Source: Utricularia gibba (taxonomy: Eukaryota; Plantae; Magnoliophyta). Taken from it: DNA of 64,000 bases. This document shows positions 52,170 through 61,839 of this stretch, piece after piece (the stretch's first letter is position 1; each line of letters begins with the position of its first letter). Both the position numbers and the translations under genes were made by a program. The DNA is taken from assembly GCA_002189035.1 (NCBI GenBank), contig NEEC01000029.1, positions 372,001 through 436,000 on the forward strand, in the 5' to 3' direction. The notes beneath the pieces were generated by a model. The model had not been told where the DNA came from. It was given only the letters and a program-made list of their open reading frames with translations, and ran no database searches.

Positions 52170-53988
52170 ATGGAACCACCACCGGAGGAGCCGACTCCAC
52201 CGCCTCAGCCGTGCAAAACCTACAAGCTCACCGCCTTGGCTATCTCCTACGCTAAACCGGCCACCATAGCGCCCAGACTCTGTTTCAAGCCATGCATTTC
52301 GCCGCCGCCTCTTTACATCCTCAAGGAAATCACATTCACCGCCTATCCATCGGAAATCCTCGCCGTTGTGGGCCCTAGTGGCGCAGGGAAATCCACTCTG
52401 TTGGACATTCTCGCAGCCCGTACCGCCGCTACCGCCGGCCAGCTCCTTTTGAATTCCTCCGCCCTGAATCCTTCAGCTTTCCGTAAGCTTTCAGCTTACG
52501 TTCCACAGCACGATGCATGTCTCCCTCTGCTCACCGTTTGTGAAACCTTCACCTTCGCTGCTCGCCTGCTGAAACCCAAAACCGCTGATATCTCCGCCAT
52601 TGTCTCCGATCTCATGACCGAGCTCCGCCTGTCGCATCTGTCCGACACGAGGCTCTCCGGCGGCCTCTCCGGTGGTGAGCGTCGTCGTGTTTCCATCGGT
52701 TTAAGCCTGCTACACGACCCGGCGGTGCTGATTCTCGACGAGCCCACTTCAGGGCTCGACAGCAGTGCAGCGTTAAATGTGATGCAGACGCTGAGATCAA
52801 TCTCCGATTCGCAACATCGAACCGTGATTCTATCCATTCATCAGCCCAGTTTCAAGATTCTATCCACAATCGACAAGATTCTTCTTCTATCAAAAGGCAG
52901 CGTTGTTCATCATGGAACACTGCCTTCTCTTGAAGCTTTCTTGCTCTGTAACGGCTTCACAGTCCCCCTCAGCTAAATCCTCTTGAATACGCTATGGAGA
53001 TACTGAATCAGCTCCAGATAAGTGAACCCATTTCTCCATTGCCCCTATCCCCATGCACCCACGAAAGTTGTGATTCTACAATCTCAGCATCATCATCTCC
53101 TTCTGAGAGCGTGGACAAAGAAGTTGTTAGCTACAGAAGCTCGAGATTCCATGAAACGATCATTCTCTATTCCCGTTTCTGGAAAATCATCTACAGAACA
53201 AAGCAATTACTTTTGGCGAACACCTTGCAGGCATTAGGAGTTGGGCTCATTCTCGGCACCATTTACATCAACATCGGAATCGGGAAATCTGGAATCGAGA
53301 AGAGATTTGGTTTGATTGCCTTTACACTAACATTTCTCCTTTCCTCAACCACAGAAACTCTCCCAATCTACGTCAACGAGAGACCCATTCTTCTGAGAGA
53401 AACTTCAAGCGGAGTTTACAGGCTATCTTCATACCTACTGGCGAATACTCTGGTTTTCATGCCGTATCTCCTCGCAATCGCCATTATCTTCTCAGTCTCA
53501 CTCTACTTCCTAGTCGGCTCTGCGCCAATTGGCAAGCGTTCGCATACTTCCTTCTCCTGATCTGGGTTATAATTCTGGTCGCCAATTCCTTGGTTCTGTT
53601 CCTCAGCTCCATCGCTCCCAATTTCATCGCGGGAACTTCGCTGTTAACGGTATTGCTCGCCGGATTCTTCCTCTTTTCGGGCTACTTCATATCGAAGGAA
53701 AGCTTACCCAAATTCTGGCTTCTGATGCACTACCTGTCCATGTACAAGTACGGGTTCGATGCTTTGCTGATCAACGAATACTCTTGTCTGTTCAATACGT
53801 GCTTGATCTGGGCCGATGACAAGACGAAAAGCGCGTGCTTTGTGAGCGGGAGGGACGTGATGGAGAAGAGGGGACTCCATGAGCGTCAACGATGGATCAA
53901 CGTGTACATCTTGGTGGGCTTCTTCGTAATGTATCGAGCGCTTTGGCTCATAGTTCTGATCAGGAGAGTCTCCAGATCCAAGAGATAA
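52170..53988 (+). CDS. ABCG half-transporter (ABCG4/ABCG8, WBC type), intronless; 1-nt frameshifts at about 52966 and 53517
   Basis: Walker A GPSGAGKST, signature LSGGERRRV, Walker B LILDEP, H-loop SIHQP; restoring one base at each site gives TVPPQLNPLEYAMEIL and LVGLCANWQAFAYFLLLIWVIILVANSLVLFLS; ends RRVSRSKR*. Confidence 0.93.
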
Positions 53989-54309: not shown

Positions 54310-54830
54310 ATGGGCCGTGCTTGTCTTTCAATGCAAGCAACCCCATGGCATTCATTCCCTGCCGCGATCAAAATCGCCCATGCTCCCACATACACTCACA
54401 ACACTGGCCAACGTGAAGTGTGTCGGTATAATCTCATGGAGTAATAACATTCCAAGGCTTTGTCTTTAAAACCATTTTTTGACAACATACCTATCATCAA
54501 ATTCCACGACACCATCACCTTTCTGGCATTTGTTCGAATACCCTGTAGGCAACAGCCGCGTCATTTGATTTGTAGCAAGAATCTAAAACTGTGTGCTAAG
54601 AGAATATGCTTTTTCATGACATCCCTATCATCAAATTCCAGGATATCTCATTCCTTTCTGGCATTTGGACGAACAGCCAGCGTTGAAACCGCATTTGAAG
54701 TACAGCTGAATCAAACGGTTCACTAGGAAAGAGTTGGAAAACTGATTTGTATGATGAATGTAAGCCCGAATCAACTTCCCTGCCTTAAGGAGTTTATTGT
54801 TTATATATATGTGTGTGTCATGGACGTTTT
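54310..54830 (-). pseudogene. Truncated, disrupted PLS-class PPR gene relic (At4g20770-like N-terminus, recalled)
   Basis: Fragments NNKLLKAGKLIRAYIHHTNQFSNSFLVNRLIQLYFKCG, LFVQMPERNEISWNLMIGMS*, VFEQMPER/VSWNLMIGMLSKNGFKDKALECY, PTHFTLASVLSVCGSMGDFDRGRE/CHGVA, with stops, frameshifts and a GAAT duplication. Confidence 0.85.
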
Positions 54831-55583
54831 CCAGTTTGCAAGCTACAAGCATGCATTGCTCTGATTCGCTGAACGTGCAAATTCTGGATAATCGCATTCA
54901 TCCTTCCATGTTCTTGAACCTCATTTGCTGCCGATGGAGAACCGAGTTGGTGACTGCACTGCACTGCACGTGTGAATAGAATGGATTGGTGAGAATGACG
55001 ATTTTAAGCAATTAAATTACCCTTTTATTCTAGATGCTTAGACACCACGAATTGGGGATAGAAGAGATCATCTTGTTCACCCCTCGGCCCGGCCCCGGCC
55101 CATAAACAACGGGTCCATAACTGCCTTCGCACTTGCAGAAGAGCGTTTTTCGGAGATGAAGAACCCTCCTGAGCGGAGACCTGTATCTTAGTTAAAACCA
55201 TGAAATATAAGGTTTATTTTAAATCTACGTTTGAAATGAACCCTGTTATCAAACACATGATTAATAAACCCAACTGAGGAAAACCAGGCCATTCACCCTA
55301 CCAAACGCGCCCTAAGTCGTGTGTAGTTGATCTTGATAGGCATGAAATATTGTGCGAGTTGAAATCTGGAATGACGACAAATCCTATGTCTACTTCAGGG
55401 TCCCGATGTCACCTTTCGAGCTCCCCCAAACGCGTATTCTTATTTTTTGTTGTTTCACGCTTCGCCCTCAAACGTGCAAAGAAGGAGATTTCGTGGAAGT
55501 TCACCCTGTTCAAACGATGGCGGTATATCTACTTGTATTTCATACACACTCTTATGCAGGGCATTCCATTTGTGTGAAAGGAG

Positions 55584-58142
55584 ATGTCATATATTTACGA
55601 CAACTGGGAGAGTTTGGTGGCTGCAGTTTCGAAAAGGGAACGCCATCGGAGGCTTGCTCGTCTTCCTTCACTCAGCTCTGGATCATCTGATACCAGTTCG
55701 GAAGATGATTCCAGTTCCAGTTTCTGTTTCTTACCTCCCTCGAAGAATCAGGAGCACCTAGTTCAATACCCGTCGGATTTCAATCAGAAGCAGGTTGCAG
55801 CACCCTTTTCAAGGTGACTTCTTCTGTCATTCGGTTTTTTCTTTCGGCGAGTCTTTGCTGGATTGGGACAATAACACTGATTTTTGTAAATTTGTGTCTG
55901 CTCTCAGCCGTCCCGCGACACCTAATAATAGAAATTCCAGCTTGGCATCTCGTAGGAAGAGGGATCTGAGAATTCAAGTACCAGAGCCACCAGCACTTGG
56001 TTCTTGTCTAGATAGCAATAAGTGCTGCCCGAATATTAGTTCAACAATTCCAAGTGCCAGGTTTCTTTGTTCCAGGCCTCACCGCTTACCTCTACCTCGG
56101 ATAGCAGAATCAGGCTCTTCATCCTCTTCTTCGCCATCTACAAGATCACCTTCTCTGTCACCACCTGGTCATGTAACAGATGGAAACGCTAGAAGCCCGG
56201 GATCTCGATGGAGAAAAGGAAAGTTGATCAGCAGAGAAGCTCTTGGGAACATTTACATGGGATTTAACAGGTTGGTTGGCGTGCTAATTTAGATTGTTGA
56301 ATTAGCATATTAAGTGGTTCTGGATTTTGTCTTCCTGATTTCAGTGAATCTGGTAAATATTGTGTCATGAAAGAGACTTCCCAATCATATGATGATGAAG
56401 AGTTAAGATTGAGGGCAAGTGTATTGAAAAAGGTGAGTTTTGGTGTCTTGGATCTACCATGGACCTCACAGAATTTAGAATAAGCCTGACAAAAGCTCCC
56501 TTTTTTCCTGATTGGAGCTTTTACCGGGTGATTCTCATATGGCATGATATTATTTGAACTGCTTCAAGGACTTGGTTTCTTCAGGTGATCGCATTTCAGA
56601 GTGAATTGAAACATCCTAATGTCATGCAATACAATGGTTCTGAAATGGTCAGTTTATTGCACGAATTCTTGCCCTTTTTTGTTTCAATTGTTATTTTTCT
56701 GAATATCCACTAAACTATTCCTATTTCCTCGAGCAGGTTGATGATAAGATCTATGAGTGTTTTGAGTATGTATCTGGAGGTCCGATCTCTGTGTTAATGC
56801 AAGAATTTGGGAGATTAGGAGAACCAGCTATCCGTAGTTATACTCGACAAATTTTACATGGGCTAGATTATTTACACTACAAAATGACTGCTCACGGGTG
56901 AGATTCCTCGAAGTGCTGCAGCATATTCTGTGATTCAGTTATTTAAGAGAATCTGTTACATTTCAAGACATGAATTCACTTTAACACGTGGAGATACAAA
57001 TACATGGAGTGAAGGGTTTTGCAACATTTTCTCTTGTCCTTAATGTTCTTGTGTCATTTCGATAAATCTTGCAGGGATGTAAAGGCATCCAACATATTTG
57101 TAGACCCAGCTGGTGGGATCAAGTTGGCTAATTTTTGGTTTCTTGAGAATGTGTGTACCGAATCTTTTGTTGGTGGTCTTCTTATTTTTTTGCAGGGCCT
57201 GAGTACTTATTGCTGTTCTGTTTTTGTACTTAACCCACGATACTCCATTGGTTTCACAGCTTCCAGTGCTAAGCCGCACATTCTGGATAGAGAGTGCGTA
57301 CTGGATGGCACCTGAGGTGCCTTATGCGTCCTTAAATTCCACAGCTAGTTGCTCCTAAGCCTCGTTTTTACCTTGGATAGTTTTGAGCATGCAGGTCATA
57401 AATTGCCCTAGTAAATGCAGCTCTGCTATTGACATATGGAGCCTTGGATGCACAATCGTGGAAATGGCTACAGCGAAACCACCTTTTAGTCAGTATAAAC
57501 CTGTATGACGCTCAGCATTGAATCTCTTCTGGTTTCATTCTTGTGTTCTCCGTCGGTCATGTTTAATCCCATCTGGTGGCGTATAGGGGATGGCCATGTA
57601 TAAAGTCCTGAAACAAAAACAGCTTCCCAAAATTCCGGGCCATTTATCAGCTGAGGCGAAGGATTTTTTGATGCATTGCTTGCAGTGGAATCCCGAAAAT
57701 CGTTCTACTGCCCTTCAGCTTATGGAGCATCCTTTTGTGAATGGTACTTCAATAAAAAAATTGACGCTCTCTGGCTCTTCACGCCTAATCACTGAGGTAT
57801 TACCATGCTTTACCTACTGCATTAGCGTCTGATTAGAAGCCGGTTGTTTCTTTGATCTGATGAGGAGGTGAGAATCATGTACAGGGAAGCGATGAAGCTG
57901 TGGAATTTCAATTCTGGCCCGGCAGCCCTTCAGCAAGAGCACCAGAGTCGAGTGAAACGTGTTCTTCAACAACAACTTCATCCTCGGTCTCTCCTAATTC
58001 TCCTTTATCTCCAACAGCAGATGAACAACTGAAGGTGCAAATATCTCCAGCCCCATCCGTAGTGCCACATCTCACTGGGATCCCATTATTCTCCGGAGTT
58101 CATCACATGAGTCAAGGTGCTCCTCCGCTCCGTATTCGGTAA
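55584..58142 (+). CDS. YODA-type MAP3K-derived pseudokinase (open reading frame over 10 exons, catalytic motifs degenerate)
   Basis: SPGSRWRKGKLISREALGNIYMGFN, SESGKYCVMKE, LKHPNVMQYNGSE, EPAIRSYTRQILHGLDYLH, HGDVKASNI, IKLANFW, YWMAPE, DIWSLGCTIVEMATAKPPF, IPGHLSAEAKDFL; every junction is GT-AG with matching phases. Confidence 0.85.
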
Positions 58143-58750
58143 GGATAATAGGGGAGAAACTGCAGGTGCAGGTATCTCTGACTCCCTCCGAGCTTACCCC
58201 ACCAGTGCCTGGTGCTCCCTTGTACGATCATTCGACACGGCATTATTTACATGGAAGCAGTGACCCTTCGGGCGAGGGACCAATTGTGGGCTGCTAAAAT
58301 AGAGAACATGTTTCAGCCGCCAAGCCACTTGGGAATTTCCTTTTCTGGTTGATGCATATACACAATTTTAGAAGCAATAAATGTAAACCATCCGGAAGCA
58401 GTGAAATCGCGAAATGCCTGGACGTATTTCTTTCTCTGGGGGGGTCTGAGCGAAGAACTGGAGATGGCCTTTTTGAGTTTTGTAGGAAAAGTGTGAAATC
58501 ATCGCTGGTTTACGAGAAGTATGCTTCGTTGATCGGTTGATTTTTTTAGGGAGTGAGGTGGGATTTGGGAATTCCAAACCGATCATTTGATTTCGGATCA
58601 TCGGATCCTGACACCCATATATATATACGTTGCCTGCTGTTGCGGTCCCACCCGAATGCATAGCACGCTCCATTTGTCCAGGGTTTTTGTTTTAAAAGTC
58701 GTAATAATCAAACAAGCTTCCAGTGGAATTGCAAGTTGCGTTTGAGGAAC

Positions 58751-58793
58751 ACACGTGTGGTTAAAACAGTGTTCCGTTTGCCAAACACGTGGC
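58751..58793. promoter_or_regulatory. Paired G-box/ABRE elements upstream of the MBD13-like gene
   Basis: ACACGTGT at 58751-58758 and ACACGTGGC at 58785-58793. Confidence 0.5.
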
Positions 58794-59045
58794 TGCTGTA
58801 AACTTGTAATTGCAATTCCTCGCTTTCACTTCACCCTCTCTGAGAGGAAAGTGCTCCGGAGTATGCGAGGGCTGTAGAATTCATTCGAGGGTGGGATCTT
58901 GAGCGCCATGATCCCATCTGTGCTGATGTCCACCTGAAATCTACATTATCCCTCTTCCCCCTTTGTGTCTATTCTCCCTTTCTGGTCTCCGGGTTTAGAG
59001 ACATCTGGGTTTAGGTTGGGAAACTTATCTTGGGTACTTTTCCAA

Positions 59046-61839
59046 ATGGGTCTTCAAAATCCAGATTGGTTGCCAGCAGGTTGGAAAATTGAAGTCAAGA
59101 CTCGTAGTTGTGGAGGCCGTCGTGATAAGGTTTCTTTCTTTTTTTGTAATCATGTTATTCCTGTTGTTTGCACCTTTCCGTGTTTGTTGATGGAAAATTA
59201 ATTCTGTGGGAGAAGAAATGGGGTGTGTGGATCGCTGTCTGCATGACGTTAAGGACCTTGTTTTTATACAATTTATCGACATTCCGCTCTCTCATGGGGT
59301 TAGGGATTGAAGTGAAAAGTCAGACGATTCCTTCAATGAGAGGAATTTTACTCAAGTACAAGGCTCTGAACAAAAATGAGCCCAGTGCCTCAGTGAATAA
59401 GCAGCAATTTTTTACCGAAAAATCTCATCTTGTTTCCAAGCATGAACTAGGAATGGGCTAACGTGTCGGTCATAAAAATGTAAATTTGAAATTGGCGCAG
59501 TAATCCTGAGGGATCTCTACTATGGGAGCATGCGTAGCAGTGGTTCTTCTTTAGTTCTGTACATCATTTGCACAGCTTGGTTTTCTATGGGAAAAGTTTC
59601 ATGTGTCCGCACATTGGGTCATTGAATTTGTGCGGAGCCTACCTTCAGCGCTTCACTAGTTTTCCTGTTTTTCTTCTAGTATTACGTGTGCCCCGCCCCA
59701 CAAATGGATTGAAGTTGAAGTCCCAGCCTGAAGTTCTTCGATATCTCAATAGCTCGGGAAAATGTCAAACACCCATTAAGATTAAACAAGAAAATGCGAA
59801 GAAGGTTAACATCGCCCATTTCCCAAGTTTAGTTCCTTGTGTTTTAGCAGTGTGACCTTGGACCATTGCCCAGTACCTTGTATTGTATCTGGCGTCAGTG
59901 CTTCAATGTCATTCAACGTTGTAGGTTGGCGAAAAAAAGACAGTGGCTGATTTACCTGCGGCATGGATCAAGGAATTCAGAACAACAAGGAAGCGTGGCC
60001 ACAAGGCCAGAAGAGATCCGGTGCATATTCCTTTCTTTCTTTTTATGTTCCGTGCAATCTTTTTAATGCATCATGTTGGTTGTATTTCTTCTTGCAGCAT
60101 AATATCCATCCTGTCGGTGGGCATAGTTTCCGCTCAATCCCTGGAGACATGCACCACCTGCATTCTAAACTTGGAAAGATCAAGAAACTAAAAGATGAAG
60201 TGCATGTAAGTGCCGACTATTGGTTTCATTGTTCCTCATATCTCCTTTACACATTTGCTACTTCTAGTCATCTGCGAAGGCGAAACCACAGGCGTCACGC
60301 AACAAGAAAAATTATAGAAATCTATCCAACATCATGAAGTCAGGTTCTGATTTTTCGTTTTTATATTTCTTTATTGTCACTTCTTCAATTGGCTCATCAA
60401 TGTCCTTTTGTCAACTAGTCTTAGCAAGGTTTAGTTTTTCAAGGTCGGTATTGTTCGTTTATGAACCAGGGAAGAGGGTTGCAGATCGGGTGACTAGATC
60501 TCAGGAGAAAATCATGAATGTGGAGGATGACGAACAATTAGAGAAAAATGGAGATGATATTTCTCTAGAATGTGATCTCTCTAATAATCTGCAATTCTCA
60601 CTCAATGGAGTGAAACAAGAAGTTGATAATCTGCAAGTCATGAAAGTTGTGCGGAACCGGCTAGATGTTAGTGCAATATTGGATCGCAGACTGAAATCAG
60701 GTGCGCAATGATATCATTGTTAAGATTTGCATGGAAGGCATTGCAAATGGTCCTGCTGACACTATGAGCTCGGCACCTGCAGGATCAAAGGCAGCTGACT
60801 TGAAAACTGCAGATTTTATTTATGTGAAGCGGAGAAGCATCGAAAAGGAGCCCATGCATGCAAACCTTCCGGATAAGCAGCCTGAGGTAAATGAAGAGAA
60901 AGACCAAAGATATGGAAGAAGGAGAAGCAGAAGGTTGCATGAAGGCAACTTGAAGCAACATCAATCCATACATTCAGGTGCGTATCATATTCAATTGGGA
61001 TTCGACGATTTTTATGGAAATCTAGGACATACATCTGAGATTTTGATGTAATTATTTTCGCAAGATCAGAAAATGATGATGCAAAAGAAAGTTCCCAAAT
61101 CCTCCCAGAAATAGAAAGTCATCTTGGCGGAGAAGGAAATGAGCTATCCAATCTTAAACGGGAAAAAAGGTCAAGGGGCAAATGCTTTGCAAATGAATCG
61201 TTCTTTGGTAATCCAAAAAGATTAGCAGTTCTCATGGTTAGTTCTTCTGTGGAGCCACAATCCAGCAAGGAAGCCAGGGGAGATAAAGGAAAAGCAGATG
61301 AAGAAGGTATTGGTAGTAGACCCGGATCCTCATATGAGCCAGGGATCAGCGACCGCAGAAATCCTTCAGCAGAAAGGAACGGAAACCCGTCAGATCATGA
61401 GATGGGGGGCTCCGATGTGGTGGGAGATGTTCCATTTCCCGAAGGGGACAGAAATGTTGTCGATGCAACACCAAGCAGAAGCGAGAAGCAAGAAATATCC
61501 TCCTCATCGCCGTCGGTGTTGAAGGATCTGCTGATGGATCCATGCATAGAATTTGCAGTTAAAACTCTAACTGGAGCTATTACGATCGAAGATGTGAGGA
61601 ATATTGAAAGCAGCCTGATATTAGCGTATCCTTCAGCTTGCTCCTCCAGGTCCATGACTCCGTCAGGCGACATTTGGTCTGATCCTTGTTTTGAGTTCGC
61701 CGTCAAAACGCTCACTGGCGAACTCCCAATGGAGTGTGGATCAAAGCCCCAGGCTTCTTTCCATCAGTCAATGTTATCACCTAGGATCACGAGGTGCAGC
61801 AGCGGCATCAACAACGTCAGCTCCTCAAACCACTCATGA
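59046..61839 (+). CDS. MBD13: Methyl-CpG-binding domain protein 13-like; 1-nt frameshift at about 59697
   Basis: PDWLPAGWKIEVKTR...RDK / YYVCP..NGLKLKSQPEVLRYL, second repeat LPAAWIKEFR...RRDP, and the twin C-terminal motifs DPCIEFAVKTLTG and IWSDPCFEFAVKTLTGELP typical of MBD13. Confidence 0.82.

Follow-up and report, generated by a model that had tools for sequence, protein, structure and literature searches.

An expressed YODA-derived kinase-like gene in Utricularia gibba and the core-Lamiales clade of degenerate kinases to which it belongs

YODA, a mitogen-activated protein kinase kinase kinase (MAP3K), is a central switch in immunity and in development, where it acts on stomatal patterning, the polarity of the embryo and inflorescence architecture. 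It is known to be regulated by upstream kinases, phosphatases and polarity scaffolds. Its N-terminal region has an inhibitory effect, and forms of YODA devoid of kinase activity have served as dominant negatives. To our knowledge, no MAP3K-derived pseudokinase is known in plants. Here we describe a candidate of this kind, encoded from position 55584 on the forward strand of a stretch of 64,000 nucleotides of Utricularia gibba (contig NEEC01000029.1, positions 372,001 to 436,000; "the window" hereafter). It belongs to a clade of short YODA-like proteins from the core Lamiales, called S in the following. We consider it probable that this is a functional, expressed gene for an inactive YODA descendant, which would compete with, or scaffold, the YODA module.

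Plant pseudokinases acting non-catalytically are found among the receptor-like cytoplasmic kinases (RLCKs): SSP and the BSKs activate YODA, and ZED1 and RKS1 are decoys guarded by nucleotide-binding leucine-rich repeat (NLR) proteins. The S clade resembles the ZRKs in being fast-evolving and locally duplicated, but these RLCK-type proteins belong to another kinase group and none of them is MAP3K-derived. In animals KSR, the RAF-derived scaffold of the RAF-MEK-ERK cascade, offers a functional analogy: it is MAP3K-derived and has a degenerate site, and, like it, the window protein could bind a MAP2K or dimerise with an active paralogue. KSR belongs, however, to the RAF/TKL and not to the MEKK/STE lineage, and the window protein lacks the regions CA1-CA5.

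The likeness to YODA/MAPKKK4 is one of direct descent: the gene lies inside Lamiales YODA, shares eight intron positions with it, and retains the kinase fold, the YWMAPE and C-lobe motifs, as well as the C-terminal SYWDPDILR of asterid YODA, in the form SHWDPIILR. It differs by the absence of the N-terminal regulatory region of about 350 amino acids (MPSWWGK...), replaced by a DUF4219-like module, by the loss of the Gly-loop, the alphaC Glu, the HRD Arg and the DFG Asp, and by its length (589 versus about 890 amino acids). Short YODA-like proteins of the same clade, such as E. guttata ABFX02_06G032500, 'YODA-like isoform X2' of Sesamum indicum and a 'MEKK' of Handroanthus, share with it the module, the loss of the DFG Asp, the C-terminal motif and the intron layout. 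The window protein is at most 48% identical to them; it stands on a branch of 1.85 and additionally no longer has the glycines of the Gly-loop, the alphaC Glu or the QLWQLFH stretch of the module, and its gene lies outside the neighbourhood in which theirs are found.

Catalytic motifs and descent from YODA

Four catalytic elements of the kinase domain are altered together, at the positions given in a sequence-only reading of this DNA made beforehand. The Gly-loop reads SREALG (56230-56247), with two glycines lost; the alphaC Glu is changed to Val (56585-56587, in LKK/VIAFQ, where the slash marks the exon border); HRD, split between 56893 and 57078, reads HGD, the Arg being lost and the catalytic Asp kept; and DFG reads NFW (57130-57138, Asn codon 57130-57132), with both Asp and Gly lost. 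The beta3 Lys (CVMKE), the catalytic Asp and YWMAPE are kept, again in agreement with that reading. By the operational criterion for a pseudokinase, the absence of at least one among the VAIK Lys, the HRD Asp and the DFG Asp, the protein is classed as such by its lack of the DFG Asp. From the set expected of a competent kinase (GxGxxG, VAIK Lys, alphaC Glu, HRD, DFG), the Lys alone is retained intact. The MEKK signature G(T/S)Px(W/Y/F)MAPEV appears as IESAYWMAPEV, in which YWMAPEV is kept and Gly and Pro are changed to Glu and Ala. Identity within the kinase domain is lowest in the catalytic loop and activation segment (43-46%) and highest in alphaD-alphaE and the C-lobe (61-65%).

From these motifs we infer that the protein is inactive: phosphotransfer appears very unlikely, because the Mg-binding Asp, the Gly-loop and the alphaC Glu are all lost. 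An atypical active kinase, transferring phosphate by a non-canonical route with the help of the beta3 Lys, the catalytic Asp and the catalytic-loop Asn, would find these three residues in place (CVMKE and HGDVKASN). Some kinases devoid of the DFG Asp, e.g. CASK, retain a Mg-independent activity, and several S members keep GxGxxG, the Lys, the alphaC Glu and HRD, the DFG Asp alone being missing. We nevertheless regard activity of this kind as extremely improbable, as the window protein combines changes in the Gly-loop, at the alphaC Glu, at the HRD Arg and at both the Asp and the Gly of DFG, where a bulky Trp has come in. Conservation within the domain is, moreover, lowest in the catalytic and activation segment, and the catalytic positions vary across the clade, with no single new solution fixed.

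In order to identify relatives, exon 9 was searched alone against 1.84 billion representatives, and the full model was then aligned locally to the returned proteins. The exon 9 search gave no match above 64% identity, and thus neither the window's own protein nor a close orthologue. The best matches over the full length are short proteins (610-730 amino acids) whose alignment begins at residue 1. They belong to Phrymaceae (Erythranthe), Orobanchaceae (Rehmannia, Castilleja), Pedaliaceae (Sesamum), Bignoniaceae (Handroanthus), Scrophulariaceae (Buddleja), Lamiaceae (Phlomoides, Salvia, Perilla), Acanthaceae (Andrographis) and Gesneriaceae (Henckelia). Searches with one member and with a profile of the clade revealed no S-type protein in Oleaceae or outside Lamiales; in the profile search 21 S-type proteins, all from Lamiales, ranked above every canonical YODA, and no new members were gained. 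The gene models of the clade are automatic predictions, and at least one of them (P0001) is a fused tandem pair.

In a tree of 62 rows the S clade forms one group (support 100) within Lamiales YODA, after the split of Oleaceae, and with the full-length alignment the window gene falls inside it (99 and 100, SH-aLRT). A tree of the kinase domain only produces the same placement (support 100), which is therefore independent of the shared N-terminus. Of the nine window introns, eight share their alignment columns with introns of the S genes and of a YODA-type gene (P0251); the first is found at a position specific to S, at the junction with the new exon 1, and the tenth intron of the S clade is missing. 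The origin from YODA put forward in the sequence-only reading is supported by these trees and intron positions.

The motifs of 120 proteins were tabulated. Canonical YODAs are invariant for GRGTFG, HRDIKGAN and DFGMAKH. At the DFG site the S members seen carry NFG, SFG, SFA, SFV, NYG, NLG, NFI or NIG; the Henckelia member is an exception, since it keeps DFG, but reads HRN. Several members carry HGN, HSD or HGH at the HRD site. The loss of the DFG Asp thus seems to be already ancestral to the clade, and most of the 'pseudo' state would not be specific to this locus. As judged from the sequences, S represents an order-wide core-Lamiales family of YODA-derived, putatively dead kinases, rather than a lone oddity; among the members seen, the window copy has degenerated most and evolves fastest. 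The C-terminal motif of the clade, (S/P)YWDPxIL(R/Q), is found in the window protein as well, only in the reading frame corrected by RNA, as described below.

The S genes of Erythranthe, Sesamum and Salvia are positional orthologues, within the order CitMHS, YODA-type gene (where present), S, adh_short, DUF7733. The clade most likely arose by tandem duplication of a YODA paralogue, since a YODA-type gene adjoins the S gene in Erythranthe and the two carry consecutive locus tags in Castilleja and Buddleja. The claim that the gene is an undescribed component holds as far as full-text searches can tell: these revealed no paper on a clade of pseudokinases derived from YODA or MEKK, nor one on the protein family sharing its N-terminal module. 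Members of the clade are present in databases under generic names ('YODA-like', 'hypothetical').

Gene model and transcripts

The region 54500-59500 was translated in three frames, and a gene of 10 exons, separated by nine GT-AG introns with matching phases, was recognized from 55584 onwards. The model was compared with contigs from three RNA studies of the same organism, as well as with those of run X11, whose record is labelled as another organism. All nine predicted junctions are present as GT..AG joints in contigs from runs X5, X9 and X10, and some also in X11. About 0.67 of the sampled words occur in the RNA runs, near the exonic share of the stretch, and expression is found in all RNA studies listed. 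The in-phase splicing of ten exons, predicted from sequence, was thus observed; introns 3, 5 and 6 also occur in retained form. These introns flank the alphaC exon and the catalytic-loop/DFG exon, and retention of intron 5 brings in an immediate stop.

The 3' end had been placed at 58142 in the sequence-only reading, and this proved to be wrong. The assembly is one base short in a run of C: a C is inserted behind 58050 (between 58050 and 58051) at 100% depth in X5, X9, X10 and X11, and in X5 this is the sole difference from the window. The stop at 58140-58142 is therefore an artefact. The corrected frame continues to 58297, for a total of 589 amino acids, and reads SHWDPIILR, the counterpart of the conserved S/PYWDPNILR of the relatives. 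A single-base assembly error is thus sufficient to shorten the annotated protein. Further homopolymer errors may be present in the same assembly. Besides the wrong 3' end, the sequence-only reading had missed the old core-Lamiales clade with its ancestral loss of the DFG Asp and the swapped-in N-terminus.

The 5' untranslated region extends over 55493..55583, the longest RNA contig beginning at 55493 and others at 55531 and 55558. Exon 1 (55584..55813) provides the start codon and the N-terminal module (MSYIYDNWESLVAAVSKRE...), a degenerate form of the DUF4219-like module of the clade. Exon 2 (55908..56270) encodes a Ser/Pro-rich linker, followed by the first part of the kinase domain, in which the remnant of the Gly-loop lies. 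Exon 3 (56345..56432) carries the beta3 strand and the conserved Lys (codon 56370-56372), and exon 4 (56585..56647) the alphaC helix, with Val at the conserved Glu position. Exon 5 (56737..56897) covers beta4-alphaE and ends with the His-Gly of HGD; exon 6 (57075..57150) contains the catalytic loop DVKASN, with Asp, Lys and Asn kept, and the NFW site, and has a weak donor (AAT/gtgtgt). The degenerate activation segment is encoded by exon 7 (57260..57316), in which YWMAPE is kept at 57299-57316, the alphaF region (DIWSLGCT...) by exon 8 (57395..57502), and alphaG-alphaI, to the end of the kinase domain (CLQWNP...MEHPF), by exon 9 (57587..57796). Exon 10 (57885..58297) encodes the C-terminal tail, with WDPIILR at 58076-58096 and the stop codon at 58295-58297, both in the C-corrected frame. 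The 3' untranslated region (58298..58406) runs to the poly(A) addition site, marked by an A-run behind 58406 in X10. Pfam Pkinase matches are found in exons 5, 8 and 9.

The gene is compact, with introns of about 90 nucleotides. Upstream of the main ATG an open reading frame (ORF) of 57 codons (55517-55690) overlaps it out of frame, and a second, short one begins at 55556. These two ORFs are contained only in transcripts beginning upstream of them, the longest contig among these. Some RNA contigs at 57292-57316 and 57461-57496 run on into GQSCPLSFKG and EGVAAMFKIG, which are canonical YODA motifs; the same organism therefore also expresses a canonical YODA paralogue. No second kinase copy was found within the 64-kb window. 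The gene lies between one for an ABCG-type half-transporter (ABC_tran and ABC2_membrane; 52170-53988) and a gene start at 59050-59130 (MGLQNPDWLPAGWKIEVKTR), which resembles, by eye, a methyl-CpG-binding-domain (MBD) protein.

Selection on the S genes and on the window copy

Compared between the same two species, S proteins have diverged about 1.5 to 25 times faster than canonical YODA (Erythranthe 15% vs 0.6%, Sesamum 16% vs 2.5%, Salvia 12% vs 8%). The ratio of nonsynonymous to synonymous divergence (dN/dS) is between 0.31 and 0.51 in all S pairs, and 0.14-0.15 for the YODA-type neighbour. When the window gene is compared with those of Handroanthus or Sesamum, dN is 0.51-0.52 and dN/dS 0.32-0.36, with dS saturated at about 1.5; much of the long window branch may thus reflect a generally fast lineage. 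The dN/dS check suggested in the sequence-only reading is therefore favourable as to the ratio, and limited by the saturation of dS. The S genes of E. tilingii (L001 10001-13379) and E. guttata (L002 10001-13282) are 82-87% identical at the DNA level, with dS 0.21-0.25, and the adjacent YODA-type gene of the same pair shows 94% identity and dS 0.05. This deep divergence could be due to hidden paralogy, gene conversion or long-lived divergent haplotypes.

Substitutions in the window protein have spared constrained sites, as retention falls from 85% at residues invariant among S proteins (90/106) to 20% at variable columns (12/59), with intermediate values of 62% at columns conserved in at least 90% and 42% (105/253) at those conserved in 50-90% (Fisher p ~1e-14). 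Among accessions, 11 single nucleotide polymorphisms (SNPs) fall in the coding sequence, 6 nonsynonymous and 5 synonymous (pN/pS ~0.4). Nonsynonymous density (0.0044) is below synonymous (0.012) and intronic (~0.011) density, the 3' flank also exceeding it. In a simulation of neutral change, 0.05 substitutions per site left 2% of the replicates free of stops, and 0.1 left 0.04%; an open frame of this length is not due to chance. According to dN/dS, site retention, SNPs and frame survival, selection has acted over essentially the whole branch; recent death of the gene is unlikely, but not impossible. The view that the gene is retained, and not dead, agrees with these data and with its expression.

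Several observations weigh against a functional, inactive regulator. Inactivity is read from motifs, and some kinases function without the canonical ones. Because dS against the relatives is saturated, present-day constraint is documented by the 11 SNPs and the intact ORF. Contigs in which introns 3, 5 and 6 (56433-56584, 56898-57074 and 57151-57259) are kept are about as deep as the spliced ones, for which reason part of the RNA pool may be unproductive, and the share of such transcripts sizeable. The terminal branch of the window gene measures 1.85 substitutions per site, versus a median of 0.11, and the window is not syntenic with the other S loci: tblastx of three orthologous loci against it matches the S gene alone.

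Some of these features would be expected from a transcribed relic, a gene whose function was lost recently and which drifts, its frame and splicing not yet having been hit. Such a relic could well be the most degenerate S member, stand on a branch far longer than any other and lie away from the ancestral neighbourhood; abundant intron-retaining contigs and an upstream ORF overlapping the start in the longest 5' ends would also fit, as would a pN/pS resting on so few SNPs. We judge it very improbable all the same: the frame of 589 codons and 18/18 splice-site dinucleotides are intact, so that the simulation allows at most a few percent of neutral divergence, substitutions avoid the sites invariant in the clade, nonsynonymous SNPs are rarer than synonymous and intronic ones, and expression is seen in every RNA study listed.

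The N-terminal module and possible roles

Members of the S clade share the N-terminus MS.xYDNWERLVAAVLKKEQLWQLFH, where YODA has MPSWWGKSSSKE. The window N-terminus is identical to the S consensus at 19 of 30 positions and to YODA at 5 of 30. In the window protein the long regulatory domain that starts with MPSWWGKSSSKE in YODA is replaced by MSYIYDNWESLVAAV... The module, of about 45 amino acids, gives sub-threshold matches to DUF4219 (N-terminus of copia Gag) in 21 of 27 members, the best with E = 1.3e-5. In an ESM Atlas search with the module, all scores were 0.60 or lower. An origin of this N-terminus from callose synthase was found unsupported, as none occurred in 80 matches to residues 1-45 of P0001 (candidates of ~654-2081 amino acids); in this search a resemblance over 17 residues could lie below the limit of E = 10, and Pfam gives DUF4219 instead.

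The search with the same 45 residues identified about 60 further Lamiales proteins of 660-780 amino acids, carrying the module at 71-94% identity, along with one CC-NB-ARC protein and one PH/RCC1/FYVE protein. The proteins of 660-780 amino acids are annotated as 'probable inactive receptor kinase' and are encoded in large tandem arrays; examples are P0313, P0297, P0292, P0330, P0324 and P0289, with some 50 more, from Lamiales only, and arrays are seen in Buddleja (Bualt06G0129000-0130500) and Rehmannia (DH2020_010107-010120). One such protein was inspected and contains two domains of receptor-like kinase (RLK) type, both with HGN at the HRD site and both pseudokinases. Conservation is higher in the module than in the kinase domains that follow it. 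The arrangement of two such domains recalls the architecture of the pseudokinase-containing tandem kinase proteins (TKPs) of cereals, and the window protein, unlike a TKP, has one kinase-like domain. The catalytic loop of the window protein (HGDVKASNIF, 56893-57099) and that of the S proteins from Salvia and Perilla (HGNIKAAS) are similar to the HGNIKASNIF of the module-bearing pseudokinases, which may be convergence or coincidence. The CC-NB-ARC protein, P0353 of Phlomoides rotata, is an NLR that begins with the module, either as an integrated module or as the product of a fused gene model. Since the module heads other Lamiales proteins too, the S clade is a chimera, made of a foreign N-terminal exon and of the linker, kinase domain and tail of YODA.

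The company in which the module is found suggests an immune decoy or sensor: the S pseudokinase would mimic YODA or MAPKKK3/5 as a bait for effectors that target MAP3Ks, without catalysis, and its module would tie it to a guarding system common to dual RLK-like pseudokinases and NLRs. The fast divergence of the S proteins is in line with such a role, as are the four to five times more synonymous change of the Erythranthe orthologues relative to their neighbour, the variation of copy number by local duplication in Buddleja, Handroanthus and Phlomoides, and the presence of the module in large tandem arrays and in one NLR. We hold this explanation to be unlikely. Unlike typical decoy arrays, the S clade is low-copy and conserved in position across families, dN/dS remains well under 1, the single NLR fusion may be an artefact of the gene model, and no effector or NLR partner is known; an aquatic plant of the bladderwort type probably has, furthermore, a reduced immune repertoire. 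The stronger proposal that the module marks a Lamiales-specific surveillance system, made up of dual RLK-like pseudokinases, at least one NLR and the S clade, must be considered quite doubtful. In such a system S proteins would be integrated 'MAP3K baits', reporting the attack of effectors on YODA or MAPKKK3/5, or joining MAP3K-like surfaces to a common partner dependent on the module.

We thus favour a non-catalytic regulator of the YODA module, which could have arisen as follows. A YODA paralogue would have been copied, most likely in tandem, its long N-terminal regulatory region being exchanged for the DUF4219-like module. The Mg-binding DFG Asp would then have been lost, and in the window copy also the Gly-loop glycines, the alphaC Glu, the HRD Arg and the DFG Gly, so that phosphorylation would be replaced by the binding of partners. 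Selection would keep the residues of the fold, the P+1/APE segment, the C-lobe, the C-terminal WDPxILR motif and the N-module, as surfaces of contact with other proteins. The partners we infer are those docking on the C-lobe and C-terminal tail of YODA, namely substrates of MKK4/5 type, BSK/RLCK activators and YODA itself. By binding them the protein may compete with the YODA-MKK4/5-MPK3/6 module or scaffold it, the N-terminal module serving as a separate recruitment input; the scaffold or dominant-negative regulator proposed in the sequence-only reading would correspond to these two possibilities.

If this is true, the S clade would represent a natural 'kinase-dead, N-terminally swapped YODA' maintained under purifying selection. 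It would provide a handle on what the YODA kinase domain and tail bind, and on how the output of the cascade is tuned or monitored, and the N-terminal module that it shares points to a large, unstudied family of Lamiales pseudokinases.

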